Shown piece by piece: positions 511-29,335 of a stretch of 33,675 bases of DNA. The notes under the pieces were generated by a model. That model was given only the letters and a program-made list of their open reading frames with translations. It had not been told where the DNA came from and made no database searches. Numbering within the stretch: the first letter of the stretch is position 1; every line of letters starts with the position of its first letter. Position numbers and translations under genes: made by a program. Source of the DNA: Cyanophora paradoxa CCMP329 (lineage: Eukaryota; Plantae; Glaucophyta); NCBI GenBank assembly GCA_004431415.1, contig QPMI01000703.1:1-33675 (forward strand). Reading direction: 5' to 3'.

Positions 511-531
511 ACCGGCCCGCAGCGGAAAAAC

Positions 532-2671
532 ATGGGACGCCGCAGCACAGCCTTAGGTTCATAGCTGGTGCTCCTGTAAGCGCGTCGGCATTGCTCCGCC
601 CGGTCCGCGCCGTGCGTCGCCCGCCATGCGCCGCGGCGCCGCGGCGTGCAGAACCGGGCCCTATAGCCCAGGCACGCATCGTTTTGGTGCGCGGCGTCCG
701 CGGACGAGCCGAAGGAAGCGTCTAGCTCCAGCGTGCGTGCCAGATCCCACGTCGTGCCAGGTCTCGTGTCGTGTCCAGGCCGCTCAACCAGGCCCGCACG
801 TGCAGGCGGCGCCGGCGCGGGCCCCGGCGGCGCCCCCGACACGGTACGGGGCGGGGCGCAAGACACGGTACGATCAGGCGCGGGAGGCGAGCGGGCTCGA
901 CTCGGAGACGTTCGACCGCTACGAGGACGAGCTGAAAGACCCCGTGCGCGCGCATGCGCCGGCCCGGGCCCCCGCCCGCCGCGCGCCGGCCCTCGTGAGT
1001 GACCCGTCTCCTGCGCAGGTCATCTTCATCGAGGTGAGGCGCAGGCCCCGCGCCGGAGCGCGCCAGGAGCGGCGCGCCGCTGAGGGCGGGTTCGGGGCGG
1101 CTCGGCAGTGGCTGGTCCCGCGGCCCGTGCGGCTGTTCCTGTACGCCGGCATCGGCGGCAACGCCCTCCTCGGCGCGGTGCGCGGCGGCCCACCGCGCCC
1201 CGTCGCTCGGGGGCGGCGGCGAGCGGGGCTGGGGCGGGGCAGTTCATCCAGGGGACGGGGGTGCTGGCGCGCTCGTCGCGGGGCGAGGCGCTGGGGGAGG
1301 AGCTGCTGGCGAACCTGGGGCTGAACCTCGCGGGGGCGGCCGGCATGGCCGCCGCCTTCCTCCTCGACCGCTGGCTCGGCGAGCGCCGCCGCGCCCGCCG
1401 CGCCCGCATCCGCGAGATCCAGGCCCGCCCCCGCCCCCGCCCGCCCCGCCCCCCGTCTCACCCGCGCCTCCGCAGCGGCTACGAGCCGAGCGGGAGGGGG
1501 CGGGGCCGGCGGTGCGGGCGGCGCGGGCGGAGAAGGAGCGGGCGGGGCGGCGGTGGTGGGCCCGGGGGGCCGGCGGCGGGGGGCGCCAAGCGGACGAGGC
1601 GGAGCGGATGCTGCGAAGGCTCTCTCGCATGGGGCCGGCGCGCCCTCCCGCCGTCCCCTGCGCCGCCCGCCCCTCCCCGGCTGAGGGGCGGGCAGGTGCC
1701 GATCGTGGGGGAGGCGAAGGCGCGCGTGCTGCGGGAGCTCGTCGCGGCGCTGCCCCCCGGCGCCCGCGTCGTCGAGGCCCGCACGCGCCCCGCCCGCCCC
1801 CTCCCGCGCCCCAACTGCGGCGCCGACTGCCCCGGCGGGGCGCGCGCAGGTGGCACTTTCCTGGGCTACTCGGCGATCTCGATGGCGCAGGCGCTGCCCC
1901 CGGGGGCGGAGGTCGTGACCTACGAGAAGGCGGGCGCCCTCGCGCGCCGCGGCGACGGGGGCGGGCTCTGAGGGCGGGGGCGGGGGTGCAGGACGTGCGC
2001 TTCGGGCTGCCGGCGATGCGGTTCGTGCAGCAGGCGGGGATGGGCGGGCGCGTGGACGTCAAGCTCGGCGACGCCGTCTCCCGCATCCCCAGCGACGCCG
2101 CCGCCTGGCGCCGCAGGCCCGCGCCCCCCGCCGCCCGCCCCGCGCCCCGCGCCCCGCGCCCCGCGCCCCGCGCCCCGCGCCCCGGGCCGGCCTCTGCTGA
2201 GGGGGCGGCAGCGAGCGGGGGGCGGTGATCGACCTCCTCTTCCTGGACGGGGCCCCCGGGGCGCGCCCCGGCCCTCCCCCGGCCCCCGCAGCCCCTCCAG
2301 CTCTCACCCCCGGCAGGAGTACGAGGCGTACCTCGAGGCAGCGCGCCCCTACCTCCGCCCGGCCTCGGTGCGCCCCGTCCCGCAGGGCCGGGGCGCGCGG
2401 GGGCCGGGGTGACGGGGGGCCCCGGGGCGGGGGCGCCGGGGCCAGGTGGTGGTGGCGGACAACACGGGGATCTTCGGGGAGCAGCTGGCCGGCTACCTCG
2501 CCGCCGTCCGCGACCCCGCCCGCTTCGCCTCCGAGGTCCCGCCCCGGCCCCCGCCCCCGCCCGCCCCGCGCCTCCGCCTGACGGGGCGGGCGGCCGGGGC
2601 AGTCGATCGAGGCGCCGCTCGCGAACTACCCCGACACGATCGACGCCATGGAGAAGAGCGTCCTCCTCTAG
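532..2671 (+). CDS. Putative plastid-targeted DUF3493 (LPA1-like membrane domain) + catechol O-methyltransferase-like SAM-dependent methyltransferase; about 10 introns
   Basis: The spliced translation has a transit-like FIAGAPVSASALLRPVRAVRR, then PRPVRLFLYAGIGGNALLGA-FIQG...LLANLGLNLAGAAGMAAAFLLDRW (DUF3493-like), then VPIVGEAKARVLRELV...RVVE-xGTFLGYSAISMA (SAM motif I), IDLLFLDG, VVVADNTG and DAMEKSVLL-TAG (2669-2671). The start is approximate and needs homopolymer indel corrections. Confidence 0.8.
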
Positions 2672-3157
2672 ATCAAGGACCCCTCCCCTTCCGATTGGTA
2701 CTGTGTACTGTCGACGTCAACTGCCGCTGTGTAGAAGTACGTGTAGCCTAAATTATGGCAAGGCCAAATTGCAACACCTGGATTGGATCGAATTTCTAGG
2801 TCATCTAGATCTAGATCACAAGGGTAGAGCCGTGGCGTCCGTACGGATGGGAGCATGCGCAGCCGGCGCCGTGAAGGCTGAAGTCGATTTCGGAGCTAGT
2901 GCACATGCCACGGTGAAATCTTAATCGGATCTGCAGCCTGTGCAGGCCCGCCAGCGAAGGCTGCGACGCGCGTGGCGGGCGACGCTTGAGTTTCTCGGAC
3001 GCGGGAGGGCGCTGGCGGGAACGATGACGTTGCCATCAGGAACAGCAATTCACAAACCGCTCTGACCTTGCGCGTGGAGCCCGGCTGATGCTCCGCTAGC
3101 TTGCTCCCCCGCTTCCCGCCTCCAGCGGCAGCGCGTCAGCAGCCGGCACGTCCAAGG

Positions 3158-4917
3158 ATGGTCCCATTCGATCTCCAGGCACCGCCCGTCACTTCCGTGG
3201 CGCGAAAGCGGACAGCCGGCGATCTCAGCGATCCCAGCGGCAGCGCGGGGCCGGGACGCCGGCGAGCGAGGACGGCGCGCTCGGATTCGCTGCTGGAGGG
3301 CTTCCGCCCTGCAGGTGGACGCGGCGTTCGGCGAGCGTCGATGGCGGCGCCCGCAGCCGCCGCAGACGTACGAGAGGCGTGGGCCTACTCACAGCGAGGA
3401 GCACGGTCCGCGCGCCCGCCCGACGCCTCGCGCGGCGCGGCGTGCCCCGCCGACGCCCGCGGCAGCGGCTCTTGCCTGCAGATCTCGGACATCCTCGCCG
3501 CCCTGCCAAGTGGGGTCCGAGGCCCGCGCCCGCTCCTCGGCGCCGCGCCAGCGCGCCGCCGACGCTCGGGCGCGAGGTGGCGGCGGAGAGCGTGCTGGCG
3601 AGGCAGCGGCAGCGGCGCAAGAAGAAGAAGCAGCGCGGGCCGAGGCAGCCGCCGAGGCGCAGGCGGCGGGCGGGGGCGGGGCGCAGGAGGGGCGGGGGCG
3701 GGGCGCGGGCCGTCGTTGATCTGGGCGCACTTCGAGCCGGTGGGGAGGGGCGAGGCGGCGGGCGCGGTGCTGCCACTGCGGGGCGGAGGTTGCGCTGGAG
3801 GGGGGGTCGACGTCGGGGCGGGGCAGCACCTGGCGCGGGCGCACGGCCTCGAGCTCCCCAGCGCCGCCCGCCGCCGCGACGACGACGCCGCCCTCCTCGC
3901 CGCCGCCGCCCTCCGCGCGCCTCCGCCCCCGCCCCGCCCGCCCCGGCCCCTCCCGCCCCGGCCCACGCCCCGCCACCGCCCCTTCGCCGGCTCCTCCCCG
4001 CACCCCGCGGTCCCCTGGGCGACCTGGCGACGCTTGCGCTCGGGGCCGGCCCCGCCGCCCACTTCTTCCTGCCTCTGCCTGCTGTCGCTTTCGCCCCGCC
4101 GCCTTCGCCCGCGACCTCGCCGCCCGCCCCCGCCCCGCCGGCCCCGCCGGGCGGCAGCGGCGCCCTGCCCTCGCCCGTCGGGCCTCCCCTGGGGCGCCCC
4201 CTGGGCCGTGCGCTCTGCAGAGCCGCCGCCGCGCCCGCGTCTGCGCGCCCGGCGGCCCCCGTCGCCGGCCGCCACCTCAATCCAATCTCCGCCCGCAGCC
4301 GAAGCCCGCCTTCGCCGTGCTCCCCGCCGGCGCCGCGCTCGCCGCGGGGCGCCCTCGCCCCGCCTCCGCCCCCGGGGGCGCAGGGTTGGCCCCCGCTCTG
4401 CCCCCCCGGCCCTCACGCTTCCTCCCAGCGCCCCTCCTCCGGGGCAGGCCACCCGCTGCCTCCCACAGCGCCCGCCCCGCGCCGCCCCCGCGCCCGGCGC
4501 ATCCCGGGGCCGGCCGGGCCGCGGCGCGGGCGGGCCTCTGGATGGTCGTGGCGGGGAGGGAAGGGGCGGAGGCGGGGGAGCGGCGGGCGGCGGCGCGGTC
4601 GTTTGTGTGGGGCTACTTCCGCGGGACGGGCGGGCCGGGGGCAGGAGGTCGCCCGCTGCACCCTCTGCCCGACGCCGTCCTCTCCTTCTCCGGTGCGCCC
4701 CCATCCCCCCATCCCCATCCCCCCCCCCCCCCCCCCCCCCCCGGAGCCGACGTGCAGCCCCGGCAGGGTCGACGTCGAGCTCTCCTACCACCTCGCCACC
4801 AGCACGGCGTCCAAGGCCCTCGAGCTCCCGCCCCGCCCCGCCCCGGCCCCGCCCCGGCCCGCCAGCGCCCAGCTTCAGCCCGGCCCCGTTACGCCCCGTC
4901 CTCGCCCTGTCATTTAG
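3158..4917 (+). CDS. Hypothetical spliced protein with a basic NLS-like patch (RQRQRRKKKKQR) and Pro/Ala-rich linkers
   Basis: ATG at 3158 (MVPFDLQAPP). Protein-like exons include ISDILAALP, SLIWAHFEP, VARCTLCP and VDVELSYHLATSTASKALEL. No family recognised, and the exon structure is uncertain. Confidence 0.5.
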
Positions 4918-5025
4918 TCATTGACCATGGCACCGTACGCTTGGCACCCGTTGACCGGGACCCTGCAGCTGTGTAAGAATTCGAACTCAGAACTGATTTG
5001 AAAAACTTTTTGGGGTTCAACGGTT

Positions 5026-5140
5026 ATGCGCACTGCGGCATGCGTGATCATGACCGTCGGACAATTCAAGTGCTTCATGATCAAGCTTGGGCCGGCACCA
5101 CTGGACGAAGTTGGAGCGCTGGCACTGCCGCAGTGCGCAT
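5026..5140. repeat. 115-bp MITE-like foldback with perfect 15-bp terminal inverted repeats
   Basis: ATGCGCACTGCGGCA (5026-5040) is the reverse complement of TGCCGCAGTGCGCAT (5126-5140). There is an inner inverted repeat, TGATCATGA (5045-5053) / TCATGATCA (5075-5083). No clear target-site duplication. Confidence 0.6.
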
Positions 5141-5419
5141 GCGGCACTGCAGCAGTACTCGTGCGCCAAGACTCTCACTGAGTCAGGCTCTCAGAGTCTG
5201 CTGCTGAGACGTCGGACTCTGAGACTCTGAGTTTCAAGTTTCACGAGTCCGACGTAGACGGTCATGATCACTGAGTCATGCCATGATGGCTTATATATGA
5301 GGCATCAATGGCCAAACGCGAAAAGTCAACTCCGAGAGCTCGAGACTCGGAAGTGACGCTTGGATTGCGGAGGTTCTTATAACCGCCGCAACAGCTGTGG
5401 GGTACCCCTTCCGAGGCTG

Positions 5420-5527
5420 GCGATCGCGGCGATCACGAGCCGATCGCGACCCTGGCGATCGCGATTTTCTCCGATCGCGACCCTTTTCGATCGCGATTTC
5501 GAGATCGGGGCATTTCTGCGATCGCGA
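5420..5527. repeat. Iterated CGATCGCG(A) palindromic motif array
   Basis: CGATCGCG occurs at 5421, 5441, 5456, 5472, 5488 and 5519, with degenerate copies at 5430 and 5502. Spacing in the core is about 15-16 bp. Confidence 0.9.
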
Positions 5528-5653
5528 GAAAGGAAAAATCGGAAAAGGCCGAAAAGTGCGTTTTTCACGCGTGAAATCGACCCAAAACGAGGGTTCGAAT
5601 CCGGGGCCGGATTTGGACTTGGGTAAAATCTCGAGTCAAATGGAGAAAAATGC

Positions 5654-5723
5654 GACTTGGACTTGGGACTTGGGACTTGGGACTTGGGACTTGGACTTGG
5701 GACTTGGGACTTGGGACTTGGGA
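5654..5723 (+). repeat. (GGGACTT)n tandem array, 10 units, G-quadruplex-capable
   Basis: Ten ACTT cores from 5655 to 5716 separated by GGG (GG in two units). Confidence 0.95.
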
Positions 5724-5779
5724 AGAGTCGGAGTCAGAGTCTGGACTCAAAAGCGGGGAAATTTTCGAAGGGGAGAAAA

Positions 5780-6047
5780 ATGGCAGACGAGCCCTATTAC
5801 GATTTCCCCTTTGAGTTGAATATGGCATTCGAGAGGTTGCGCGAGTTCTGGCGTTGGCACATCACAGGACATGAATCCCCGGAATAAGACCAGTGCCAAC
5901 ACACAGGGCGTCCTCGAAATTGTCCGTCAATATCCGCGTCGATTCAATGAATGGATTGAGTTCCACGCGACGAACCGTTTCCAAAGTCTCCCCGAGGCCA
6001 TACGCGAAAATTTCGTGAGGCTGTGGGCCAGGCTACGACAACCCTAA
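5780..6047 (+). pseudogene. Island ORF1, about 88 aa, unknown function, one frameshift at CCCC 5877-5880
   Basis: MADEPYYDFPFELNMAFERLREFWRWHITGHES continues in another frame as RNKTSANTQGVLEIVRQYPRRFNEWIEFHATNRFQSLPEAIRENFVRLWARLRQP*. The ATG has an A-rich context. The shift may be a sequencing error. Confidence 0.55.
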
Positions 6048-6273
6048 CAATCATCGACACGTACCACATGAAGACAGGGCTATTGTTCGACGGGACGGCG
6101 CATGAGACATCGCAGGGAGGCACGGGACGAGCGGACAGCCCTTCGCACCGGGGTAGGGCTCATCGAGAGGGAGGGGTACAGCCCCGGGATGTAGGGTAAC
6201 CCAACCCCGAGACTCGACCTTCGGCGGACGCACTCGGGCGATTTCCGTCAGGCCGGCTCAGCGGGTAGGGGGC

Positions 6274-6457
6274 TTCGGTCCAACTTTTTTGCGGTCCAGT
6301 TTGCAGCAAAACAGGGGGAGAAGGGACGTTTTCCGTGAGATTTCCTTCGGCCAACATTTTTTTAGGTCCAGTTTGCAGCGAAGGAAGGGGGAGAAACGTA
6401 AGAAAAGGCCAAATTTGGCTTTTTTCAGGCCAGTTCGCAACGTTTCTGCTGCAAACT
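6274..6457. repeat. Imperfect ~72-bp direct repeats with core GGTCCAGTTTGCAGC, upstream of island ORF2
   Basis: The core is at 6293-6307 and 6365-6379, with a degenerate copy at 6428-6441 and an inverted GCTGCAAACT at 6448-6457. Confidence 0.8.
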
Positions 6458-6630
6458 AGCCCAGGAAAAAATTCGCCCACAAACCGCGGTCCGCCGCCAT
6501 TTGGCTCACTCTTACAACGGGTTCGCCGCCTTCTCTCAGCCAAGCAAACTCTGCCTCTCCGAATTTTACAAGTCCGCTCTCTCAGTCACCTCACGTTTTG
6601 CCTTTGCTGATCTCTTTTCCCTTTGCGCAG

Positions 6631-7649
6631 ATGTCGCCTGTCTCTGAGATTCCCTCTGAGCTTGCCAAGGACTTTGCCAAGGCTCGCAATCTGCACAAGT
6701 CCGGACTTTGGCCTACCCTGCCATGGAGCGTCGCGCCAAGGCACTGGGGTACAACTACGGCTCCTACCACGGCTTGAACGGCGTCTGCTACCTTGGCCTT
6801 TTCCGCAAGGATGACGTCAAGAATCCCGAGCCCAAGCCCGCGCCGTCATTCGTCCCAACTCCGAAATGCTCCAGCTTCAAGCCGAGTCTGCGCCGAGACA
6901 CTCGCCTGGGCCAACCCCCTCAAGCCTTCACGAATTACCCCCTCCGTCATCGTCGTCATCTGCCCCCGAGCCTGCCCCTCAGCCCGTCGCCGAGCCGCCC
7001 CTCAGCCGCCGATGACGCCAAGTCCGAGGCTCTGACGCGAGTCTGACATCAACGACTTCATCGACTTTGACGTGCCGATTCCATACGACTCTGAGTCGTC
7101 TTCTGACTCTGAAGGCGACAACGAAAACCCGACTCGCAAGCGCCGCATTATCAAGACCAAGTCAATCGTCAGAAGAAGTTCATGGAGACTACGTCATTCA
7201 CCGACAACTCGAGCGCGTCAAGGACCCCGCAAGGAAAACGCCAAGGACTTGAAGCTCGGCGCTGGCATTGCCGTTCTCGTGTGACGTCACACTACAGCGA
7301 GCGCCTGACTCAGCACGTCAAGACCATTGAGAAGCGCGTCCTCTGCAACGAGCTCCGCAAGGAGTTGGAGCGCAAGCGGCGCCACGAGCGCCTTGTCCAG
7401 TACCAGATCAACAAGGCGCGGATCGCCGAGCGCAAGCAGAAGGAGGCAGCCGAGCTCAAGGCGCGCATCGAGGCTCAGCAGCAGCGCGAGGCAGAGGCGG
7501 CAGCGGCCTTGGCGGCGCAGCGCGAGCGCGAGCGGCAGGACTTGGTGCAGGCAGCGCAGGCCCTTCCCCGCATTCCCCTTAAGTCGGCGCCCGAGGGCCT
7601 CATTGAGTTGGTTTCCGATGACGATGACTCTGACTTTGAGATGCTGTAA
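6631..7649 (+). pseudogene. Island ORF2, about 340 aa: N-terminal domain, Pro/acidic linker, coiled coil, acidic tail; several frameshifts; probable 5'-UTR intron at 6572-6630
   Basis: Protein-like text hops frames: MSPVSEIPSELAKDFAKARNLHK, MERRAKALGYNYGSYHGLNGVCYLGLF, DINDFIDFDVPIPYDSESSSD, PTRKRRIIK, ELRKELERKRRHERL, LIELVSDDDDSDFEML*. Upstream is GTCCGC...CTGAT-pyrimidine tract-CAG|ATG. Confidence 0.55.
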
Positions 7650-7723
7650 ATAGTATTGCGTCATTCCATTGTACATACTTGTAAAAATTGGCCGACTATT
7701 CAGTTACGACTTGGCGCGATCCT

Positions 7724-7747
7724 GGGACTTGGGACTTGGGACTTGGG
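7724..7747 (+). repeat. Second (GGGACTT)3GGG array, a perfect minimal G-quadruplex motif
   Basis: GGG ACTT GGG ACTT GGG ACTT GGG, ending 25 nt before ATG 7773. Confidence 0.9.
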
Positions 7748-7772
7748 AATTTCTTGATGTGTGCAATTGCAA

Positions 7773-8459
7773 ATGTCGGATGCAGAGGAAGCGCCCAAGG
7801 ACGTGATCGCACAGTTCATAGATCAGGTCAAGGACCTTAGACGCTGGGTGGTAGAGCAGGCCTCGCGACCGAATCGACAGCGCCAACCCTGGCCGGTGCT
7901 AGAGCTGGCCCGGGCAGGGTGGCTAGACACGCATTACAACTCTGGCGGGGCCCTTTACGTTCGGAGCCACGACGAGGGCAGGATTATCGACGAGTTCAAG
8001 CGCATCTGGTTCGCCCTGGGCTCCAAGCTCAGCATACTCTCGACCTCCCGGACCACATTCGCATGCAAATCTCGAGTGGTACGCGAAGGCAAGGGACTCG
8101 CAATGGACGACGTAAATTTGCGCGACCTCTCGCGCTTGCGCTCGCTGTGACGGCGTATGTCACAAACTATGATTATCACGTCAAAAAGCCCCAATTCGAA
8201 GTTGAGCCAATTCCGATGAATCTGGTACCCTGGATGGAAGAGTACCCGAGTACTCGTGGAACAGGGCCTCAACCCCCGCGCCAGCCCTGCCAGCCCCGCC
8301 GCCCCACCGATAAACGGCCCCGCCCCGCGTGACGTCAGACGGGACATACGCGAATGGGAGGAGTGGAGCAACGACCCGAAGAACTGGCTACCCGGGGAGG
8401 CGGAGCTGCGCAAGCGCGCGAGGCTGATGCCCGGCGACAGGTACCCCGACCGCGAGTAG
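7773..8459 (+). pseudogene. Island ORF3, about 225 aa, unknown function, two or more frameshifts
   Basis: MSDAEEAPKDVIAQFIDQVKDLRRW...MDDVNLRDL, then ALAVTAYVTNYDYHVKKPQFEVEPIPMNLVPW, then VRRDIREWEEWSNDPKNWLPGEAELRKRARLMPGDRYPDRE* in successive frames. Confidence 0.5.
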
Positions 8460-8469
8460 GGGGTACAGG

Positions 8470-8475
8470 TATAAA
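8470..8475 (+). promoter_or_regulatory. TATA-like box upstream of the GNAT ORF
   Basis: TATAAA ends 21 nt before ATG 8497. This is short for a TATA-to-ATG distance, so the call is tentative. Confidence 0.35.
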
Positions 8476-8496
8476 TTCTCAGCGAGCCGCGAGCGA

Positions 8497-9222
8497 ATGT
8501 CGTACGGCGATCAGGAAGCATGGTTCAAGCTACACCGCCTCTTTCCTGATAAATTCGGCAATGCGCGCTACCCCCTCAACCTAATGACACGAGTCAACCG
8601 GCGGACCAGGGAATTCAAAATCGAAGTGTTTTCATCGTCCCCCGAGAGCGGCCGCTCCGCGGACAACGACTCCATGGCATGGTTATACGGCTTCGTCCAG
8701 CCTCGCGTCGGCAATAAGCCAGCCACCGTCGAAATAGAAAGCTACTACAACGATTACGGGCCGCAGGGGGGGTACGGGACGCCCGAGCAGAGGGATTCGA
8801 TGCGGGGGGCGGGCAAAATCCTGATGCGGGCCGCTGTAGACGCACTGCAGCGCTCCGGGCTCATTAGCTCGTCGGACCCGGGCGAGCACGCGGTGGAGCT
8901 CAAAGCCCTCCCAAGCGCAGTGGAGTACTACGAAAGGGAATTGAGTCTGCGCAAGAGAGACCTCGCCTTTCTCACCTACACACCGTCCCTAACACCCATG
9001 GAGGGTACGGTGCAGAACATCATCGACAACACGTACAACGTGGCCGTTCGCTGGCGCAAAGCGGCGGCGGATCTCGTAAAGGGCAACTACAAGGACCTCG
9101 CAGACGAAGACAACCCCGTGGGGGAGTACATGGAGCTGGCAAGCGGGAGCATCGTACCCCGCCGGAGGCCCCCATGGCCCCACCCCGACCTCGAGTGGGG
9201 ACCGTCGCACTTCGGCCAGTGA
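8497..9222 (+). CDS. Intronless GNAT-family N-acetyltransferase-like protein (island ORF4), 241 aa
   Basis: Intact ORF with an acetyl-CoA-binding motif A-like RDSMRGAGKILMRAAVDAL followed by a motif B-like VELKALPSAVEYYERELSL. Confidence 0.7.
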   Translation: MSYGDQEAWFKLHRLFPDKFGNARYPLNLMTRVNRRTREFKIEVFSSSPESGRSADNDSMAWLYGFVQPRVGNKPATVEIESYYNDYGPQGGYGTPEQRDSMRGAGKILMRAAVDALQRSGLISSSDPGEHAVELKALPSAVEYYERELSLRKRDLAFLTYTPSLTPMEGTVQNIIDNTYNVAVRWRKAAADLVKGNYKDLADEDNPVGEYMELASGSIVPRRRPPWPHPDLEWGPSHFGQ

Positions 9223-9833
9223 GGGGGTACAGCATTCAGTTAGAGCCTGAGCGTAGTCAGAGGCCGGGAGGCCCCCCGGGGGGTACGTCGGCTGTTACTC
9301 CCCGCGTCGGTTAGTGCTAGCCCCCCTGTTAGTGCAGCGTGTACCTGATCGCAATATAACACCCAAACCTCCGTGACGCGTGACTCATCGAACCTCCGAG
9401 GGTTAACAATGCATTGACAGCGAAGGGGCAAGCTCGAGAGCTCGACCTTTGGCAAGAGCCCACTTATATATATATATATTGATCCTGGGACCCGGGATCC
9501 AGGCTTAATTATAAGGCATAAGAAGCTTATGCTCATGATCACTAAGTCAACGACCGGCTTGAACTCCCGAGGCTCGGAACTTGGCCCCCCGGGGCCTGCT
9601 ACTCAGGCCTGCAGGGCCTCGAAGTCTCGCAAGCGGACTCGTGGTATCGACTGCACGACCCGGCGACTTCTCGCCCGACTTCGCGGCCAAGGCCTGCCCT
9701 ATAGAGTACAGGGGTTTCGCCGCTGCAGGGGACCCTCCATGCCAGCCCGGCCGCCCAAGGAAGCGAACGCCGGTTCGGCGTTGGCATGGACGGCTCCGCG
9801 AGCCGCCCGGCGACAGCGAGCGAGCGAGGGGGA

Positions 9834-12800
9834 CTAGAAGGGCCGCCCCCCGAAGCCGCCCCCGCGCCCGAAGAACTGGTTGAAGAACTCCGGGGGGAAG
9901 CCGCCGCCGCCGCCCCCGCCGCCGCCGCCGAAGCCGCCCATCCCGTCGTCCGCCGGCCCGTTGGTCAGCTGCCGCCGGCCTCAGGGAAGAGAGAAGCGGG
10001 AGCAAGCGGGACGGGGGATGAAGCGGGTGGGGGTGGGGGGGGTGGGGGGTGGGGGGTGGGGGGGGTACCTCCTCGTAGGCGGCGGTGATCTTCTTGAAGG
10101 CCTCGTCCGCCCCGGCACCGCGCACTTGTCTGCCCCGCCCCACAGCCGCCCCTCAGAGGCGCACGGGCGCGCGGGGCGGGGCGGGCGGGCGGGGCGCACC
10201 GGGGTGGAACTTGCGGGCCTGCATGTAGTACGCCTTCTTCACCTCGCTCTCCGACGCCGAGCGCTCCAGACCGAGCGTCTGCGCGGCCGCCGTGAGGGGC
10301 GGGCGGCGGGGCGGGCGGGGTGCGGGTGCGCGCCTCGTGGGGCCCCCGCGGGCCTTGACGACGCGCTTGATCTCCGCGAACGTCGCCCGGTCCTCCGGCG
10401 CGATCTTCGACTCGTCGATGTGCGCCAGCGCTGCCGCAGCCTCAGCCCCGCGCCTGGCCCCGGCGCGGCGCGAGGGGCGGCGCGCACGGCAGACGGGCTT
10501 GGCGGCGGGCGGGGGCGCCCCCAGCCTCCCCGAAGCCGCCCCCGAAGCCGCCGAAGGGGTCGTCGCCGTAGCCGTAGCCGCGGCGCTGCTGCTGCTGGCG
10601 GCGGGCGCGCTCCTGCTCGGCGCGGCGGCGGCGGGCGGCCTCCTGCTCGGCGCGGGCGCGGGCGCGGGCCTCGAGGACGGAGACCTCGCGCTCGACGGCC
10701 GCCTTGAGCACCTCCACGTCCCCGAGGCGCCCCTCGAGCCGCAGCAGCACCGCCGCCGCCGTCCGCTGCTGCACCGACACCGCGAGCCGCAGCCCCCCGG
10801 CCCGCACGCGGGCATCGATGAAGGCGGCGAGCTCCGAGTCGTAGAGCTCTGCGGAGAGGCGGAGGGTCTCGTAGACGAGCTTGGCGCGGCGGGCCGCCTC
10901 GGCCTCCACCGCGGGGAGGTGCTCCTCGAAGAACGCCTCCAGCCCGCTCGCCACCCGCCCTGCACGTTGCTCTGCGCCCTGCGCGTCGGCCCCCGGCGAC
11001 AGGCGCGCGGCGGGGCGGGGCGGGGCGGGGGGGCGGGGGGGCGGGGGGGCGGACGCGGAAGACGACGGCGATGTCGGTGCCGTCCTGCTCGCGGGCGACG
11101 GAGACGTGCGACTGGAACCACGGGCGGCTGCTCTGCCGCTGCGCCTCGCCGGCGAGGGCGGAGAGGGGGCGGATCTTGCCCTGCGCGGCGAGGTCCCGCA
11201 GCGCCTCGTCCTGCTCCTCGCTGAGCTCCACGCGCGCCTCCAGCAGCTGGCCCGTCGAGTTCGGCGCCTCGTCGAAGCCCCACTGCAGCGTCGCCGCCCG
11301 CACCGCCGCCGCCGCCCGCGAGAGGGCGCGCTCGAGGCGGCGGGGCGCGCCGTCGCGGCCGCGGGCGGAGACGAGGAGGCGGGCGATGGAGCGCCAGGCG
11401 GCCTCCACGTCGTCGCGGTCCGTGTCCGCCTGCACCTCGAGCACCTCGTGGGCCGTCCCCGCGTTCAGGATGCGGTGCACCTCCCCCTCCAGCGTCCCCG
11501 CCTTCAGCCGCCCCAGCGCCGCCTTCACCTCCGCCGCCGCCCGCTCCCCCACGAGGCGCGCCCCCGCGCGGACGACGAGGTAGTGGGCGATGGAGCGGGG
11601 CTCGTCGCGGGCGAAGGGGGCGCGGGGGGCCTTCGGCTGCGAGCGCTCCCGCTCGACGCGGATCTGGACACCGGCGTGGCGCGCCGCGACCTCCTCCGCC
11701 AGGCCCTCCTGCTCCACGTACGCCGCCTGGCCCCCAGTCAGAGCGCGCCCCAGAAGAGAGGCGGGGGGAGGGACCTCCTTGGCGAAGATGGGGAGGCGCG
11801 CCTCGTGGGGGCGCGCGAGGGCGTCGGCGTGGGCCGCGACGGCGTCGCTGAGGCGCTGGAGGTCGGAGAGGGGCAGGCCCCGGCCCCGCAGCAGCAGCTC
11901 CCCGCCCTCCACCACCACCTCCACGCGCTCCCGCCCCGCCGGCCCCGGCCCCCGGCCCCTGGCCCCGCCCCGCCGCCCCGCCCCTGCTGCCGCCGCCACC
12001 CGCGCCCTCGCTATCGTCGTCGCTGTCCGACTCCTCCTCCTCGTCGCTCTCCTGCTCGTCGCTCTCGTCGCGCCAGGCGGGGCGGGCGGGGGCGGGGGCG
12101 GGGCCGGCCCAGCCGGGGAGGCTCCCGGCGCGCAGGTCGGCCTGGATGCGCTCGGCGAGGTCGGCGGCGAGGAGCGCGGGGAGCGCCACCCGCCGCTCCT
12201 GCAGCGACGCGAAGAGCGCCTCCAGCTCCCCCCGCGCCCCCGCCACCGCCTCCTCCGTCTCCCCGAAGACGCGCACCTCCAGCGGGGCGCCCGAGCGCGG
12301 GTCGACGTGCACCGCGTGCGCCTCCTCGATGCGCTGCACCTCGTCGTCGTGCGGCCCGAAGCCGCCCAGGAACTTGCAGAGGTCGGGCGCGAACTGCGCC
12401 GCCGCGATCCTCGCGCTGACCGGCCCCAGAGGCTCCTCCGGCTCCTCCGCAGGCGCCGCCGGCGCGCTCGGCGAGCTCGCCGTGAACTCGAACGACAGGC
12501 CGGCGAGCTTCTCCGCCACGCCGTCTACGGCCCCGTAGGCCTGGGCGATCGAGACGAGCCCATCCACGTCCGGCGGGGCCGCCTTCCACGCCGCGGCCGC
12601 TTCGGGCACAGCGTGGCCGCTCGTCCCGTTAGATCTCCGCGCCGCATTGCGCTTCCGCCTCGCCCGCTTGGCAGCGCGCGTTGAGGGCGGCTTCGGGACT
12701 TGCTGGTCGCCCTCCTCCTCGGTGAGCGCTTCCGGGGTGCTCAGTTCGAGCTGCGAGGGCGTAGTTGGAGGAATGATGAGAGGGCGAGCACGAGGGACGC

Positions 12801-12948
12801 GCACGATGTCTTCAATGTCGGGCACCTCCAACTCGTCGTGTTTGGGCGGGGGCGCGGCCGATCCGGAGGACGTGGGCGGTGCGGCTGGCGGCGCTGCGGG
12901 CACCGAGGCCTTCGCGGGCTTGCCCGCGTCGAAGAAGCCCTTCTTCAT
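9834..12948 (-). CDS. J-domain (DnaJ/Hsp40-type) protein with a KH-like region, a degenerate internal J-like segment, a C-terminal J domain and a G/F-rich tail (copy A)
   Basis: MKKGFFDAG start; FLGGFG...LEVRVFGETEEAVAGARGELEALF (KH-like); AHEVLEVQADTDRDDVEAAWRSIARLL; TLGLERSASESEVKKAYYMQARKFHP|DKCAVPGADEAFKKITAAYEE (HPD motif split by an intron); GGFPPEFFNQFFGRGGGFGGRPF-TAG. Confidence 0.85.
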
Positions 12949-12993
12949 CCGTGAGTTCTACACCTGTACCCCACTCAACCTGCACACAAAAAA

Positions 12994-17100: not shown

Positions 17101-17240
17101 TCTTCAATGTCGGGCACCTCCAACTCGTCGTGTTTGGGCGGGGGCGCGGCCGATCCGGAGGACGTGGGCGGTGCGGCTGGCGGCGCTGCGGGCACCGAGG
17201 CCTTCGCGGGCTTGCCCGCGTCGAAGAAGCCCTTCTTCAT
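14121..17240 (-). CDS. J-domain / KH-like protein (copy B)
   Basis: Same sequence as copy A apart from homopolymer indels. ATG at 17240, TAG at 14121-14123. Confidence 0.85.
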
Positions 17241-17285
17241 CCGTGAGTTCTACACCTGTACCCCACTCAACCTGCACACAAAAAA

Positions 17286-23093: not shown

Positions 23094-24652
23094 CTAGTGG
23101 TAGCGGGCGCGGAGGATCTGGCGGGAGCGCTCGACCTTCTCCTCCGCCGGCAGCTGGGCGGGGCAGCGGGGCGTCAGGCGCGGGGCGGGCGGGGCGGGGC
23201 GGGGCGGGAGGGGGCGGGAGCGCACGGCGCCGACGTCGAGGTCGCCGGCGTCGATGCTGCGGTTCGCGATCGCCCGCGCGTCGCTGAAGTACTGCTTGCC
23301 CCGCGGCGACGCCCCCTGCCCGCCCCGTCCCCGCGTTCCCACGGTCAGGGGCGCGGGGGGCACGCATAGCAAGCTTAGACACTGCTTGGATTGGATCGGA
23401 TTGGAAGGGAGGGTCTAGGGGAGGGCCGGGACGGGGCGCACGGCGGCGGGGAGGACGGGGAGGGCGACGCGCCCCAGGTCCCGGTCGGGGGGGAAGGACG
23501 AGTGGAAGGGGCCGGCAATCTGCCCCCGCGTCAGGCCAGACTCGAGCTCACGCGCGCGCGGCGGGGCGCGGCGGCGCGGGGCGGGGCGGGGCGGGCCTCG
23601 GCGGCCTTGTGGCGGGCGCGGAAGGGGGCGAGGGCGGTGGCGCGGGGGTCGGGGTGGTCGCCGTAGGGCTCGTCGAGGCTGAGGAAGGCGCCGGCGGTCG
23701 GCGCCGTCTCCATCCGCCGCACCACAAACTCCGTCGCCTGCGCCCCCGGGGCCCCGGGCCCCCGCCTCAGCCCCCCGCCCCGCCGCGCGGCGCGGGGCCC
23801 CCGCGGGTGGTGCCGGGGCGGGCCTTGCCGGTGACGCCGGGGAGCGGGCGCTGCTGGCCCCGGAGCCGGCGGAGCGGGAGCCGAGCGAGGGCGGGCCCGA
23901 CGAGGAGCCCGACGCGTTGCCCGGAACGACGGCCGCGCCTCCCCGCCCCAGCGGTCCGACGCGTTCAGCACCGTCCCCGCGATCGCCTCGTTCACCCGCT
24001 CCGTCTCCGTCCGGAAGCCGTGCCTGCACACGCCCGCCCCGCCTCGGCGCGGGGCGGCGCGGCGGGCAGCGCGGGGCCGGGGCGCGGGGCGGGGGCACCG
24101 CCAGACGGGCCCCTCCCTGCTCTTGACGCGCTCGCGGAAGGGGTACTGGGGGTCGTTGTAGGGCGGCTGCCTGAGGTACGGGGGCCCCGCGCGCTCCGCC
24201 TCCGCCACGCGGCGCTTCTCGGGCACGTAGTTGCGCACCCCGAAGTACCGCCCGCCCTTCTCCACGCCCCGCGGGTTGTAGTCGGACACCCCCACCGGCC
24301 TCTCCACCGCCTCTGCCGCCCCTCCCTCGGAGGCCGCCGGGGCGGGGGGGCCGGGCGGGACGGACCGACTTCGCCGGGCTTGTCGAGCCAGTCCTCGACG
24401 CGGCTGCGGAACCGGTCGGCGAGCTCGTCCCGCAGGAACGCCTTGTACTCCTGCCGCCGCCTGCCGGCCGGCCCGCGGCGCGCCCGCCCCGCGTCAGCCG
24501 CTCGAGGGGGCGCCCGGCGGCGGGGGCGCTCACCGCTCGCGGGCCTCGGCGGCCGCCCTCTCCTCCGCCTCCCGCTGCCTTCTCTCGTGCATCCACCTGC
24601 GGCGCGTGAGCGGCGCGGGGATCGACCACCGCGGCACGCACTTGTTGTACAT
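23094..24652 (-). CDS. Hypothetical spliced protein
   Basis: MYNK|WMHERRQREAEERAAAEARER|RQEYKAFLRDELADRFRSRVEDWLDKP, YPFRERVKSREGP, HGFRTETERVNEAI, KQYFSDARAIA, ERSRQILRARYH*. No family recognised. Confidence 0.6.
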
Positions 24653-24988: not shown

Positions 24989-26816
24989 ATGCAGGCGTTC
25001 GTCATCCCAGCCCCGTGCGCACAGCACGTCGCCGGCCCCGCGAGCCCGGCGCCGTTCCGCATCGCCCAGCGGCCCGCAGCCTCCCGGCTGCAACCGGCGA
25101 GGAAAGCCATCTTCGGGTCCGATGTCGCGGCCGCTCGTGAGCTCCTGGCCTCCGTTCGGCCAGCGGAGTTCCAGGCAGTCCGCAGGCTGGCCGTCGAATG
25201 CAGGCACATCCTCAGCCAGCCCCTCAGACCGCGCGCCGGTGCATTATCTTTCGCTTGCACGTGCCGCAGGCCGCGAGCGCACGCGCGCGGCCGCCGTCGC
25301 TGCTTAAGCCGTGCGCGGAATCTGATGCAAACGGCCGCCACCCTCTGTGCAGCCGGAGAGGCCGCGGGCAGCGAGGCGCCGGCTGGCGAGCTGCGGCTGA
25401 ACTCCCTGAGCCCCGCCATCCCCGTCTCACTGGTCATGGCCGCGCGTGCGTCGCTCGGCGCTCTCGCGGGCGCTGCGGGAGGGGCGGCCTGAGCGCGGGG
25501 CGGGGCAGTGGACTCGATCCTGGACGTGGGCGGCTCGCCGGGCTTCAAGGGGGCGTACGACGTGCAGCTCCTGCTCCTCTTCCTCATGTCCACCGGCCTC
25601 TTCTTCTTCATCCGCGCCTCCGTCAAGGCCCGCCCCGCCCCGCCCCACCCCGCCTCGTTGCCGACGCAGCGCGGGGCCTGACGGGGCGGGGGCGCTTGCA
25701 GGACCGGACGGAGCAGGAGGTGCTGGTGACGGGGGAGAAGCCGGCGGAGGTGGGGCGGGCGGTGTCGGAGTACATGCTGCGCAAGGGCTACCGCGTCACC
25801 GACAAGGGCGAGGACGGCGTCGTCACCTTCCAGGGGCTGGTGCGGCGCCCGCCATCCCCTCCCCGCCCCCCGCCTCGGGGCTCAGGGGCGGCGCAGGTGG
25901 CGCCGTCGGCGGGCCTGGCGGTGCTCCTCTCCATCATGGCCTTCGGCGGCCTCGAGTCCCTCGGTACCCCCCGCCCCCGAGCACCCCTCCCGCCCCTGAG
26001 GCCCGCGCGCCAGCGACGGTCATCGCCACGCTCAAGCCGGAGCTCGGCCCCCTCCCCTTCGCCATCGGCATCCTCGCCCCCGTCGCCGGCAAGTTCTACT
26101 ACGAGCGGTCCGCCCCCGCCCCACGCCGCCCCACACCGCCCCCGGCCGGCCGGGCGGGACGCGACGGGCGGGGCGGGGTGCAGGGCGGAGCGGCCGGAGG
26201 ACTTCCGGCTGCAGGTGGTGCCGCCGCCGGCGCACGGGCCCGGGGCCGCCGGCTCCAGCGCCCCCCGCACCCGCGTCCTCGTCAAGGGCCACAGCCAGGC
26301 CCGCCCCGCCCCGCCCCGCCCCGCCCCGCCCCGCCCCGCGGGCCGGCGCTCAGCGGGGCGCAGGAAATTGTGGAGTTCCGCGAGGCGCTAGGCTTCCCCG
26401 AGCCCGTCCGTCCCGCCTCGCCGGCCGGCCGGGGAGCGCCGGGGCGAGCGGGGCGGGGCGGCAGGAGCCGGAGCAGGCGGGGGAGCTCTACTGCGCGAAG
26501 TGCGTGGGGACGGGCCTCATGATGTGCCCCCGCTGCCAGGGCACAGGCTACGTCTACATGGGCATGGCCCGCCGCTGCCCCGTCTGCTGGGTCCGCCGCC
26601 CCCTCCCTGCGCAGCGCGCCCCGCGGCGCGCCTGGGCGCGAGGGGCGGCGAGCGCAGGGCTCCCGCTTCCAGTACTGCGACACCTGCGAGGAAGCCGACG
26701 TCGCCCGCGCCGAGGATCTCCTCGGCAAGAAGGAGGCCCGCCCGCCCCGCCCGCCTCCGCAGCCGCCCTTGACGCCCGCGCAGCGCGCCGCCGGTATCAC
26801 ACCCAAGCGGCGATAG
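24989..26816 (+). CDS. CCB1: Plastid-targeted CCB1 (cytochrome b6f heme ci assembly, DUF3529) with a C-terminal DnaJ-type Cys-rich zinc finger
   Basis: Transit peptide MQAFVIPAP. CCB1 core: LLFLMSTGLFFFIRASVK|DRTEQ, VTFQGL|VAPSAGLAVLLS, LAPVAGKFYYER|AERPEDF, VLVKGHSQ|EIVEFREAL. Then CAKCVGTG, CPRCQGTG, CPVCW|GSR, CDTC, ending RAAGITPKRR* (26814-26816). Confidence 0.85.
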
Positions 26817-26925
26817 GCCGCGAATTTTGCGCATCACCGCCGCGTGCAAATTTCGACATGCGCATTGGATAACAAGGGCATACGAGGCGGACTACGCAGG
26901 AGCTAGAAGCGGCGGGGGAAAATTC

Positions 26926-27285: not shown

Positions 27286-27370
27286 TTTTTACTGTACTCG
27301 TCCGCGGTTCGACCCCCCAGCAATCTGGGTTGTCATCGTACCGCGTCCGGGATGCGACGATGACTCGTCG

Positions 27371-29335
27371 ATGATGCGAGGGAAGGCTGCCGCGCGCCGC
27401 TAGCGCCGACGGCTGCGGTCCGGTCACCCGCTGCGGGCGATGCAGCTCGTACTCGTCGGCGCCGGCCATGCAAACCTCCAGGTCGTGCGCGACCTGGAGC
27501 TCCCGACTCCCACAGTCCAGCGCGGCCGGCGCGCACCGGGCATTCCGCCGCCAATTCTCATCAGCGACGAGCGATGGGCGTGGTACTCGGGTGCGCTTAC
27601 AGCTAGAGAAGCCTCTTGATTGCATTGATCGCGCTGGCGGGCGCGGAATGCCGCCGCGGCTGCCGCGCACGTCGCGCGGCGCGGGCGTGTGAGCGTTACG
27701 CGCGCAGGCATGGTTCCAGGCGTCGTTGCGGGGATCTACAAGCCGGAGGAGGCGCGAGTGGACGCAGAGGCGCTCTGCAAGAGGCACGGGTGGCTTTTCC
27801 TGAGGGCGACGGCGGCGGCGGTGCTGCCTGACCTGAAGGTTGTCGAGCTTTCAGACGGGCGGCACGTGCCGTACGACGTCCTCAGCGTCAACGTCGGCTC
27901 CGCCGTGCGCGGTAGCGACGTCCCGGGCTTCGAGCACGCCATCCCCGCCCGCCCCGCGGGGCGCCTCGTCGCCGCCCTCGACGCCTTCGAGGGGCGGTGG
28001 GTGCGGGACCCCTCCTCCTCCGTCCCCTCCATCGTCGTCGTCGGCGCCGGCGCCGCCGGCGCAGAGCTCGCGTTCGCCGTCAGGGTGCCCGCGCCCCGCC
28101 CGCCGGCCCCGCCCGCCGGCCCCGCGCCGCCGCCGCCGGTGGGAGGCTCAGGCGCGGGGCGGGGCGCGCAGGCGCGCCTGGAGCGGCTCGCCTGGGGCTG
28201 GCTCCCCGAGGTGCCCGCTTTCCCGCGCCCCGCCGCGGCGCCCGACCGGTGCGAGGGGCGCGGCGCGGCGCGGCAGGTGACGCTGGTGGACGAGGCGCGG
28301 GGCCTGCCGGCACTCGGCGCGGCCGCGAGGTTAGTGCGTCGCCGCGTCAACCTCTTTGGGATCAGGCTCCTCGAGGTCCGCCCCGACCGCCCCGCCCGCC
28401 CCGGCCCGCCCCGGCGATGTGGGACGGGGCAGGGGTACCGGGCGACGGGCGTGGGCCCCTCGGGGGTGGAGCTGCGGTGCCTGGAGAGCGAGGAGGCGAT
28501 CGCCCTGCGCGCCGACGCCGTCATCTGGGCCACCGGGCCCGCCCCGCCCCCGCTCGTCGCCAACTCCGCCAACAGCCTCGAGCGCGACCCCGCCGGCTTC
28601 ATCGCGGTGGGCCCCGGCCTCGAGCCCGAGCGCGCGCTCGAGCTTCGGCCGACGCGCGGCGCCGGGCGGGGCGGGGCGGGGCGCAGGTGGGGGCGACGCT
28701 GGAGAGCTTGTCGGCGGCGGGGGTCTTCGCGGCGGGCGACTGCGCGGGGATCGTGGAGGAGGAGGGCGGGCCGGCGCCCAAGGCGGGGGTCTCGGCGGTG
28801 CGCGCGGGGCCCGTCCTCGTCCGCAACATCGCGCGCCTGCTCGCCGAGCCGCCCGGCGCGCCCCCGCCGCCCCTCCCCGCCCGCCTCAAGCCCCGCGCCC
28901 CATTCCTCCGCATCATCAGCACCGCCGACGGCAGCGCCATCGGTGCCCCGCCCGCCCCCGCCCGCCCCGATCGCTGGCGCTGGCGCTGGCGGGGCTGAGG
29001 CGGGGTGCGGGCGGCAGCGACGAAGTGCGGGGTGGCGGTGGAGGGGCGTGGGCGTGGGGTGGAAGGACCGCATCGACCGGGCGTGGATGGCCGGCTTCGC
29101 GGGCCCCGAGCGCCCCTTGCCGCCCCGCCCGCCACCCCCTCCACCACCCCGCCGGGCCCCGAGCCCCTCCCCCCCGCCCTCCGCGGCCGCGACCGCGACC
29201 GCTGAGCCGGCCCGCCGCGGCCCCTCGGTCTCCCCTCATCAGGAGTCCGTGCACCCTGTGGGAGAGCCCGTGTACTTGTACCTGTACATTAGTGAGAGCC
29301 TGCGTGCACTTAACTTGTCCGGGTCATGTGCATGA
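27371..29335 (+). CDS. FAD-dependent pyridine nucleotide-disulfide oxidoreductase (Ndh-like, similar to the N-terminal domain of SelD fusion proteins)
   Basis: MMRGK|LVLVGAGHANLQV, WYS|GMVPGVVAGIY, YDVLSVNVGS, IVVVGAGAAGAELAFA, ADAVIWATG, VFAAGDCA, PKAGVSAVRAGPVLVRNI, WKDRIDRAWMAGF. An alternative start is at 27440, and the 3' end is uncertain (29205-29335). Confidence 0.85.

Follow-up and report, generated by a model that had tools for sequence, protein, structure and literature searches.

Self-complementary, extremely GC-rich introns with frequent GC donors in a nuclear contig of the glaucophyte Cyanophora paradoxa

The introns of a 33,675-nucleotide nuclear contig of the glaucophyte Cyanophora paradoxa CCMP329 (QPMI01000703.1 of assembly GCA_004431415.1, analysed over its whole length and called the window here) are ordinary U2-type spliceosomal introns with a distinctive shared architecture. 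From 5' to 3' the layout comprises an exon ending in (A)G, the donor G-Y-S-C-G/C-C, a C-rich (GCCCC)n tract, a branch-like CUSAS motif 11-26 nucleotides (nt) from the intron end, a (GGGGC)n tract, and the acceptor G-C-A-G followed by G. This plan, which is lineage-wide, is both real and striking. The reading adopted here, to which we give slightly less than an even chance, is that a lineage-specific, self-bridging arrangement of simple repeats is superimposed on U2-type introns, in which a generic helix would set the two splice sites next to each other. An earlier examination of the same sequence, referred to below as the original prediction, had described hairpin introns with frequent GC donors and had proposed that they may be defined by folding or by a divergent U1/U2AF, or may derive from introner elements.

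The analysis is based on a curated set of 43 introns of 47-117 nt, drawn from the published annotation, the continuity of Pfam profiles and the coding-frame marker of G+C at third codon positions (GC3) of about 1.0. In true coding frames of the window GC3 is ~1.0, third positions being essentially 100% G or C, and GC2 is 0.3-0.65 (e.g. 17873-18034 and 25511-25627); this composition also accounts for the long antisense open reading frames that puzzled the authors of the genome paper. Two published proteins match the window with 100% identity, the 427-aa protein eukprot:tig00021796_g23561.t1, found from the long exon 27710-28084, and the model named tig00021796_g23547.t2 in EukProt. Both were mapped onto the DNA with an exact spliced matcher permitting only introns that start with GY (Y, C or T) and end with AG, and they map with such junctions only. 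The 2019 assembly from which the 'tig' names come has 67.6% GC and 9.2 introns per gene, which are 86 bp long on average (Price 2019, PMC6704402), and its gene models were obtained by BRAKER1/AUGUSTUS prediction guided by STAR-mapped RNA-seq (PMC6704402).

Exons were searched singly against Pfam. Two minus-strand genes (C and H) contributed eight introns, for which the coding blocks could be joined in only one way or with consensus-like borders. A home-made dynamic-programming gene finder based on codon log-odds joined genes via spurious long introns and was used as a hint only, and a naive skew-based intron caller was discarded, as it fused adjacent introns. All 43 curated introns have U2-type termini (GY start, AG end), and the length of 27 of them is not a multiple of 3. 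Their removal restores the reading frame: Pfam profile coordinates run on across four junctions (17820, 25628, 25840 and 25964), two of them with GC donors, and the phases at other junctions fit the frames with GC3 of about 1.0. Over four further gene D introns the residue tally is 60 against 59 PF16683 profile positions.

The high frequency of GC donors claimed by the original prediction was confirmed, with 32 GT and 11 GC donors (26%) among the curated introns. The donor consensus is G-Y-(G/C)-C-(G/C)-C-C-C, with strong conservation of C at +4 and at +6 to +10, and the hexamers GCCCGC, GCGCGC, GTCCGC and GTGCGC are present as had been quoted. The GC donors had been thought to lack compensation, which is not the case: the exon ends in AG before 10 of the 11 GC donors, against 6 of the 32 GT donors (Fisher p = 3.8e-5), and G stands at +5 in 10 of the 11. 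Positions +3, +4 and +6 (C/G, C and C) would mismatch the canonical U1 5' end. Compensated GC-AG introns reportedly make up about 1% of animal and plant introns; they likewise have stronger neighbours at the GC donor, here A at -2, G at -1 and G at +5, and their frequency is ~25 times lower than in the Cyanophora window. U12-type introns (RTATCCTT donor, TCCTTAAC branch) were also considered and ruled out on the donor consensus, G-Y-S-C-G/C-C.

Other high-GC algae are closer in frequency. GC donors amount to ~50% in Emiliania huxleyi and 26% in Micromonas pusilla CCMP1545 (van Baren et al. 2016, PMC4815162), and in both, as in Cyanophora, they reach tens of percent and tend to be missed by gene predictors (PMC4815162). 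This 2016 survey names only these two algae and not Cyanophora (PMC4815162). Introner elements of high sequence identity contain 79% of the GC donors of Micromonas (PMC4815162), whereas in the Cyanophora window no introner families are seen and the GC donors follow the exonic-AG rule.

Of ten GC donors listed individually by the original prediction, seven were retained: 1930 by the published model, 17820 and 25628 by Pfam continuity, and 18035, 18584, 19290 and 26299 by phase and GC3. The donor at 1423 looks typical and is plausible, the published model reading through it; the acceptor would be 1475, as first proposed, or 1695. The region 1476-1637 has no clean GC3 frame, and the first dynamic-programming pass picked 1423-1695. 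Two donors were not upheld. The proposed intron 1777-1849 is 73 nt long and breaks the frame, and the published model reads through it; an intron with tentative borders is nevertheless likely to be present in 1777-1851, and PDB O-methyltransferase alignments begin only downstream of this segment. The proposed intron 26736-26783 is indistinguishable from coding sequence.

The published model g23547.t2 has one long exon, 1243-1929, that spans the likely introns of the 1423-1695 region and of 1777-1851. This exon translates with Arg/Gly/Pro-rich low-complexity inserts, one of them inside the S-adenosylmethionine (SAM)-binding motif I, and at such high GC reading frames stay open by chance. The inserts are explained by the retention of such introns in models by predictors that disfavour GC donors.

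It might be argued that the GC donors and odd borders are artefacts of gene models or assembly, nearby GT donors being truly used. About one homopolymer indel occurs per 200-400 nt of GC-rich sequence, the intron candidates at 1777, 19060 and 19177 are inconsistent with the frame, GC dinucleotides are so abundant that in-frame GC alternatives are common by chance, and the authors of the 2019 genome state that its models need curation (PMC6704402). However, three GC-AG introns (1930, 2117 and 2261, all in gene A) lie inside RNA-seq-guided published models, two further GC introns restore exact Pfam continuity, and the GC donors conform to one tight consensus and to the AG rule. The use of nearby GT donors, named in the original prediction as the outcome that would refute it, is made unlikely by a check of the sequence: an in-frame GT within 30 nt is absent for 5 of the 11 GC donors, and for the other six the only such GTs are Val codons without the donor consensus. 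An artefactual origin is given very little probability.

The curated introns are 86% GC and strongly polarised. The 20 nt after the initial GY contain 62% C and 28% G, and the 20 nt before the terminal AG contain 52% G and 34% C. As the original prediction had stated, C-rich 5' and G-rich 3' arms are common, being found in 32 and 27 of 35 introns, respectively, and the arms quoted for 18584-18657, 2536-2602 and 17820-17872 were found in the sequence, where they give end-to-end folds. Analysis with Tandem Repeats Finder (TRF) identified the arms as microsatellites with units of 5-7 nt, of (GCCCC)n type at the 5' end and (GGGGC)n type at the 3' end, for example (CCCGC)x8 at 26300, (CCCGCGC)x10 at 2118 and (GCGGG)x6 at 18626. 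Inside introns there are 13 pairs of a C-rich followed by a G-rich segment and none in the reverse order. The 7.2 kb of low-GC intergenic DNA holds only 3 of the 109 C-rich and 4 of the 137 G-rich arm segments of the window. Uninterrupted C-runs of 24-30 nt together with (CCCCCCA)n were observed in the minus-strand introns 4694-4766, 9969-10068 and 14256-14355.

At the 3' end the acceptor consensus is G (-4, 39/43), C (-3, 41/43), A and G, followed by an exonic G, with 41 CAG and two TAG ends. The original prediction had seen no branch consensus; one was in fact found, the branch-like CT[CG]A[CGT] (CUSAS) occurring in 21 of the 43 introns against 2.3 +/- 1.5 in shuffles; the distance of its A from the 3' junction is mostly 11-26 nt. 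The other half of the introns have isolated A residues only. From the motif to the 3' splice site G makes up 66% of the sequence and pyrimidines 33%, in agreement with the proposed absence of a polypyrimidine tract from the majority class. This absence does not extend to about a quarter of the introns, which have a C/T-rich 3' tract instead of a G arm (e.g. 2261, 18487, 18802, 19290, 25964 and 14256); that the G-rich arm is not universal had been recognised from the start.

The introns are predicted to fold with high stability (-0.54 kcal/mol per nt), which is mostly an effect of composition; against dinucleotide shuffles the mean z of the folding energy is -0.78 (p = 4e-4). A clearer signal comes from the pairing of the two ends. 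The first and last 20 nt are joined by 10.1 base pairs, compared with 5.2 in dinucleotide shuffles and 6.7 in shuffles that preserve the composition of each half (Wilcoxon p = 3e-5), and the introns exceed exonic GY..AG decoys by 9.7 pairs to 5.5 (p = 6e-7). In the minimum free energy (MFE) fold 30 of the 43 introns have at least 8 of these end-to-end pairs, and in 32 the outermost pair lies no more than 6 nt from the 5' end and no more than 8 nt from the 3' end. In 13 introns the outermost pair is G+1:C-3, which leaves the terminal AG as a 2-nt overhang on stems of 12-16 bp or more. The pairing is unrelated to the type of donor, contrary to the link between GC donors and hairpins that had been drawn: GC-donor and GT-donor introns do not differ, with 9.0 and 9.9 end pairs.

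Several results weigh against an active role of this helix. The folding energy is not significantly lower than in shuffles keeping the composition of each half (z -0.38, p = 0.07). The arms of one intron have a duplex energy of -26.2 kcal/mol, against -26.5 kcal/mol with the arms of other introns (permutation p = 0.59), and chimeric introns have 8.5 end pairs, near the value for an intron's own ends (p = 0.087). The donor is itself covered by the helix, with a pairing probability of 0.62 at +1 to +6, and end pairing falls to 6.6 if each side is extended by 10 nt of exon. Both arms occur together in 24 introns where 24.7 are expected, in a set of 35 in which C arms are near saturation, and the C arms are found in 32 of 35 introns irrespective of G arms. 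Homopolymer indels in the assembly make the arm lengths approximate and can break frames artificially, and the sample is one 33.7-kb window with about six genes. The proposal that splice sites are defined by folding is thus borderline: end pairing above decoys and skew-keeping shuffles supports it, whereas the folding energy and the equivalence of own and foreign arms do not. Intron-specific covariation of the arms was rejected, own arms being no better than cross arms or chimeras. Since an intron's own arms pair no better than foreign ones, the pairing behaves as a generic zipper, and the hairpins are not tuned one by one.

Because the arms are interchangeable, another explanation stays in play, in which the C-rich 5' and G-rich 3' tracts are independent linear signals, separate binding platforms whose complementarity is incidental. 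Candidate readers would be U1/U6 with a GC-adapted extended 5' contact, poly-C-binding KH proteins, and hnRNP H/F-like or SPF45-like G-run binders replacing U2AF65. The conservation of C beside the donor and a strict C-then-G polarity that a hairpin does not need are in line with it, and G-runs enhance splicing of short GC-rich human introns. Nevertheless, the tracts complement each other exactly and share a pentamer period, they lie at the extreme ends with a predicted helix closing at G+1:C-3, their end pairing exceeds that of skew-keeping shuffles, and the binding factors are hypothetical. We consider this explanation unlikely, with an appreciable chance of being right.

The arms could also be a neutral by-product of GC pressure and replication slippage, which would grow GC-only microsatellites around short donor, branch and acceptor motifs as the actual signals. 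The arms are indeed pentamer and heptamer tandem repeats, some of them perfect, composition and skew account for the folding energy, and Cyanophora is the sole one of 65 eukaryotes with introns more GC-rich than exons (PMC6142364). A further point in favour is provided by a direct tandem duplicate of 4.29 kb (9614-13901 and 13901-18193, 99.5% identity), the copies of which have 21 differences, all of them single-base indels in C- or G-runs, and no substitutions. The duplicate is either very recent or an assembly artefact. Such indel-only differences are, however, the signature of long-read homopolymer error, and may be sequencing errors and not mutations; comparison of intron and exon divergence between the copies was uninformative, as they differ by homopolymer indels only. 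Slippage leaves unexplained why intergenic DNA is almost free of such tracts, and the fixed polarity, with the C tract always first and the G tract last within an intron, together with the replacement of the pyrimidine tract by G, argues against pure neutrality, which appears decidedly unlikely.

The duplicate contains the minus-strand gene C and the 5' part of the transglutaminase-elicitor gene (gene D), and the copies differ in exactly the long C-runs of the minus-strand introns. A homopolymer indel probably explains the phase mismatch of 19060-19108 and 19177-19221.

Under the self-bridging reading, the steps would be as follows. Extreme GC pressure, with exon GC3 near 100%, may have produced the GC donors, a change from T to C at +2 being tolerated if the exon ends in AG, which would be the usual GC-AG compensation rule. 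The complementary repeat tracts would zip into a generic helix during transcription, setting the 5' and 3' splice sites side by side. By analogy with the (AC)n/(GT)n introns of zebrafish, the helix might flag the segment as an intron and substitute for the pyrimidine tract and the U2AF65 step. Because it covers the donor, it would have to unwind ahead of U1/U6 pairing and catalysis. Introns without a G arm could take a conventional route through the retained C/T-rich tract. The predicted folds suggest that end pairing may have a role in splicing. A bolder version, possible and rather unlikely, is a genome-wide RNA zipper in which most introns would be defined by (GCCCC)n/(GGGGC)n pairing in place of the polypyrimidine/U2AF65 step, with a GYSCGC donor code read by co-evolved U1/U6, as a system independent of, and far more pervasive than, the zebrafish case (~10% of genes).

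The original prediction also raised an origin from introner elements with terminal inverted repeats (TIRs). In this scenario a miniature inverted-repeat transposable element (MITE) with GC-rich TIRs (GCCCGCC...GGCGGGC) inserted at AG, giving both the GC donor and the AG acceptor. The intron termini are inverted repeats, GC is its own reverse complement, and introner-containing introns of Micromonas pusilla have 44-46% GC donors (PMC4815162). Yet no target-site duplication beyond chance was found: exon ends and intron ends match over 1.21 nt in own and 1.22 nt in cross comparisons, and intron starts match the starts of the following exons over 0.91 and 0.89 nt. Introner elements, reportedly known from Micromonas and Aureococcus, share inverted-repeat-like ends and GC-donor enrichment with the Cyanophora introns. 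Unlike them, the introns of the window have no target-site duplications and no conserved core, the arms being microsatellites of variable length with 5-7 nt units and no intron specificity; GC and GT introns are equally hairpin-like, and the 7.2 kb of intergenic DNA holds no free-standing copies. A literature search found no link of Cyanophora to introners. The lack of target-site duplication, the rarity of arm tracts in intergenic DNA and the lack of a literature link leave an introner or MITE origin unsupported and very unlikely.

The 2-nt AG overhang beyond the G+1:C-3 pair in 13 of the 43 MFE structures, with its stems of 12-16 bp or more, would suit mirtron-like introns, debranched to hairpins that feed Dicer, and Cyanophora has an RNA interference system. 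The small RNAs reported from it are, however, preferentially exonic or mRNA-associated, with introns unmentioned. A feature of most introns is implausible for regulatory microRNAs (miRNAs), and the stems are GC-only and often shorter than those of pre-miRNAs. A mirtron-like function is scarcely probable at all.

The closest parallel to the Cyanophora introns is that of the (AC)m-(GT)n introns of zebrafish and other teleosts, in which the repeats bridge the splice sites and splicing is independent of U2AF2 (Lin et al. 2016, Genome Res 26:12, PMC4691745), although the features that mark this class are only partly shared. In both cases complementary simple repeats lie at opposite intron ends and are predicted to bridge, the arms are generic, the polarity is fixed, and the 3' repeat takes the place of the pyrimidine tract (PMC4691745). 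The differences concern the repeat units, (GCCCC)n/(GGGGC)n against dinucleotides, the intron length, 47-117 nt against long zebrafish introns, and the prevalence, ~70% of the window introns against 10% of zebrafish genes. U2AF2 independence and repeat dependence were shown experimentally in zebrafish, whereas the likeness of the Cyanophora introns rests on sequence and predicted folds. Co-occurrence of the repeats exceeds independence in zebrafish and does not in Cyanophora (24 against 24.7, in a small sample). Human short G-rich introns without a pyrimidine tract, for which bridging of G triplets and C triplets has reportedly been described, are also short and GC-rich, with G-runs, a truncated or absent pyrimidine tract and a proposed U2AF-independent recognition. 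In contrast to Cyanophora, these introns have the polarity reversed, with G triplets towards the 5' end and C triplets towards the 3' end, and are a minority class. A search of the literature including the 2019 genome supplements revealed no account of GC-AG donors, hairpin introns, introners or pyrimidine-tract loss in Cyanophora; older subscription papers were outside this search, and an earlier mention is possible.

The coordinates of the genes and introns are listed in Table 1. Genic parts of the window are 73-84% GC and intergenic parts ~55%. A scan of the window for Rfam families and tRNAs found none, and hence no small nuclear RNA (snRNA) gene in the window. The transglutaminase elicitor family (PF16683), to which gene D is related, is known mainly from oomycetes. 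Its exon 17873-18034 encodes a Cys-rich insert with weak EB/DUF7107-like matches, and a word search with one gene D exon gave no match. In gene E the CCB1 part seems to run on into the C-terminal CXXCXGXG exon 26465-26590, which has marginal BSD2 and DnaJ central-domain matches. No Pfam match was found for gene C, gene H, the gene at 20-21.6 kb or the low-GC island at ~5000-9600 (53-64% GC). This island has coding-like blocks on the plus strand (6711-9153) with A/T-rich codons unlike those of the neighbouring genes, and repeats of (GACTTGG)x10 at 5654-5723 and of (TGGGACT) at 7723-7748; it may be a mobile or foreign element. The stretches 3100-4920 and 30000-33675 (78-84% GC) show only weak coding blocks and are likely to be low-complexity genes; two BED-zinc-finger-like peptide motifs were seen by eye in the former. 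Both stretches have a strong large-scale skew, C-rich at 4001-5000 and G-rich at 30001-33000.

Table 1. Genes, curated introns and intron candidates of the window (z, folding energy against shuffles; MFE values in kcal/mol)
Feature	Coordinates	Strand	Evidence and remarks
Gene A (g23547)	413-2668	+	DUF3493 + O-methyltransferase; 11 introns in exact spliced map
GT-AG intron, gene A	494-545	+	g23547 model map; no end pairing
GT-AG intron, gene A	603-666	+	g23547 model map
GT-AG intron, gene A	733-805	+	g23547 model map
GT-AG intron, gene A, pyrimidine-type 3' tract	944-1018	+	g23547 model map
GT-AG intron, gene A, after 15-nt micro-exon, CTGAG + G arm	1034-1108	+	Model map; 12 end pairs
GT-AG intron, gene A, G arm	1178-1242	+	g23547 model map; 14 end pairs
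Candidate GC donor after CAG, gene A	1423-1695	+	Acceptor 1475 (original prediction) or 1695 (273 nt, in-frame); published model reads through
Intron-like insert candidate, gene A, inside SAM-binding motif I	1777-1851	+	Read through in g23547 model; frame-keeping GY-AG alternative 1781-1849
GC-AG intron after AAG, gene A, CTGAG + G arm	1930-1991	+	Model map; 14 end pairs
GC-AG intron after CAG, gene A, (CCCGCGC)x10 5' arm	2117-2211	+	Model map, TRF; no in-frame GT within 30 nt
GC-AG intron after GGG, gene A, no G arm, C/T-rich 3' tract	2261-2316	+	Model map; 0 end pairs
GT-AG intron, gene A	2368-2445	+	g23547 model map
GT-AG intron, gene A, CTGAC + G arm	2536-2602	+	Model map; MFE -46.2, z = -2.86
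GT-AG intron, gene C copy 2 (copy 1 = 9969-10068), poly-C 5' part, pyrimidine tract, CTGAG	14256-14355	-	Unique frame-consistent coding-block link
GT-AG intron, gene C copy 2, hairpin class	14418-14490	-	Block link; 15 end pairs
GC-AG intron after AAG, gene C copy 2 (copy 1 = 10279-10353)	14570-14645	-	Block link
GT-AG intron, gene C copy 2	15262-15348	-	Block link
GT-AG intron, gene C copy 2 (copy 1 = 11727-11774), CTGAC	16019-16066	-	Block link
Gene D	17741-19601	+	Transglutaminase-elicitor homologue, PF16683
GT-(T)AG intron, gene D, consensus GTGCGCC	17668-17740	+	Dynamic programming + GC3 frames
GC-AG intron after AAG, gene D	17820-17872	+	PF16683 profile 33-57 then 58-104 across junction; 14 end pairs
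GC-AG intron after GAG, gene D	18035-18081	+	Phase- and GC3-consistent; next exon begins at PF16683 position 120
GT-AG intron, gene D	18240-18297	+	Phase-consistent
GT-AG intron, gene D	18342-18410	+	Phase-consistent
GT-AG intron, gene D, all-C class, no G arm	18487-18540	+	Phase-consistent; MFE only -9.8
GC-AG intron after GAG, gene D, best hairpin	18584-18657	+	Phase-consistent; MFE -62.6, z = -1.99; no in-frame GT within 30 nt
GT-AG intron, gene D, all-C class	18802-18850	+	Phase-consistent
GT-AG intron, gene D	18926-18993	+	Phase-consistent
Consensus GT donor, phase mismatch, gene D, not counted	19060-19108	+	Frame-keeping alternatives 19046 or 19067, both GC
Consensus GT donor, phase mismatch, gene D, not counted	19177-19221	+	Alternatives 19166 or 19181, both GC
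GC-AG intron after GAG, gene D, no G arm, CTCAC + pyrimidine-rich tract	19290-19355	+	Phase-consistent; z = +0.78
GC-AG intron after GAG, gene H, CTGAC	23520-23596	-	Block link; no in-frame GT within 30 nt
GT-AG intron, gene H	24024-24098	-	Block link; GTGCCCC preferred to near-tied GC 3 nt upstream; 15 end pairs
GT-AG intron, gene H	24313-24365	-	Block link; 12 end pairs
Gene E	25349-26816	+	CCB1 (cytochrome b6f cofactor assembly, PF12046) + CXXCXGXG zinc finger
GT-AG intron, gene E	25446-25508	+	Phase-consistent
GC-AG intron after AAG, gene E	25628-25701	+	PF12046 profile 3-26 then 27-72 across junction; z = -2.51
GT-AG intron, gene E	25840-25896	+	PF12046 72 then 74
GT-AG intron, gene E, no G arm	25964-26013	+	PF12046 95 then 98, split codon
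GT-AG intron, gene E	26108-26183	+	Phase-consistent
GC-AG intron after CAG, gene E, perfect (CCCGC)x8 repeat	26299-26363	+	Phase-consistent, TRF
GT-AG intron, gene E, near-perfect hairpin	26406-26464	+	Phase-consistent; z = -3.12
GT-AG intron, gene E	26591-26657	+	Phase-consistent
GC intron candidate of the original prediction, not counted	26736-26783	+	48 nt, in frame, no stop, no G arm
Gene F (g23561)	27440-29202	+	FAD/NAD oxidoreductase; 6 introns, all GT-AG, exact spliced map
GT-AG intron, gene F	27591-27707	+	g23561 model map
GT-AG intron, gene F, hairpin class	28085-28171	+	g23561 model map; 15 end pairs
GT-AG intron, gene F	28211-28276	+	g23561 model map
GT-AG intron, gene F	28376-28432	+	g23561 model map
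GT-AG intron, gene F	28607-28686	+	g23561 model map
GT-AG intron, gene F	28943-29017	+	g23561 model map; z = -2.9

With its GC donors, Cyanophora would join E. huxleyi and Micromonas pusilla as a high-GC alga in which they reach tens of percent, and three such algae would support the idea that donor-site drift is linked to GC pressure. Such introns stay in the gene models when predictors disfavour GC donors, and the Cyanophora proteomes used for phylogenomics therefore need re-annotation. Should the arms take part in splicing, most introns of Cyanophora would have their 3' end defined by RNA structure and not by a pyrimidine tract. This natural system would open U2AF-independent, structure-assisted intron definition to tests in a deep-branching archaeplastid.

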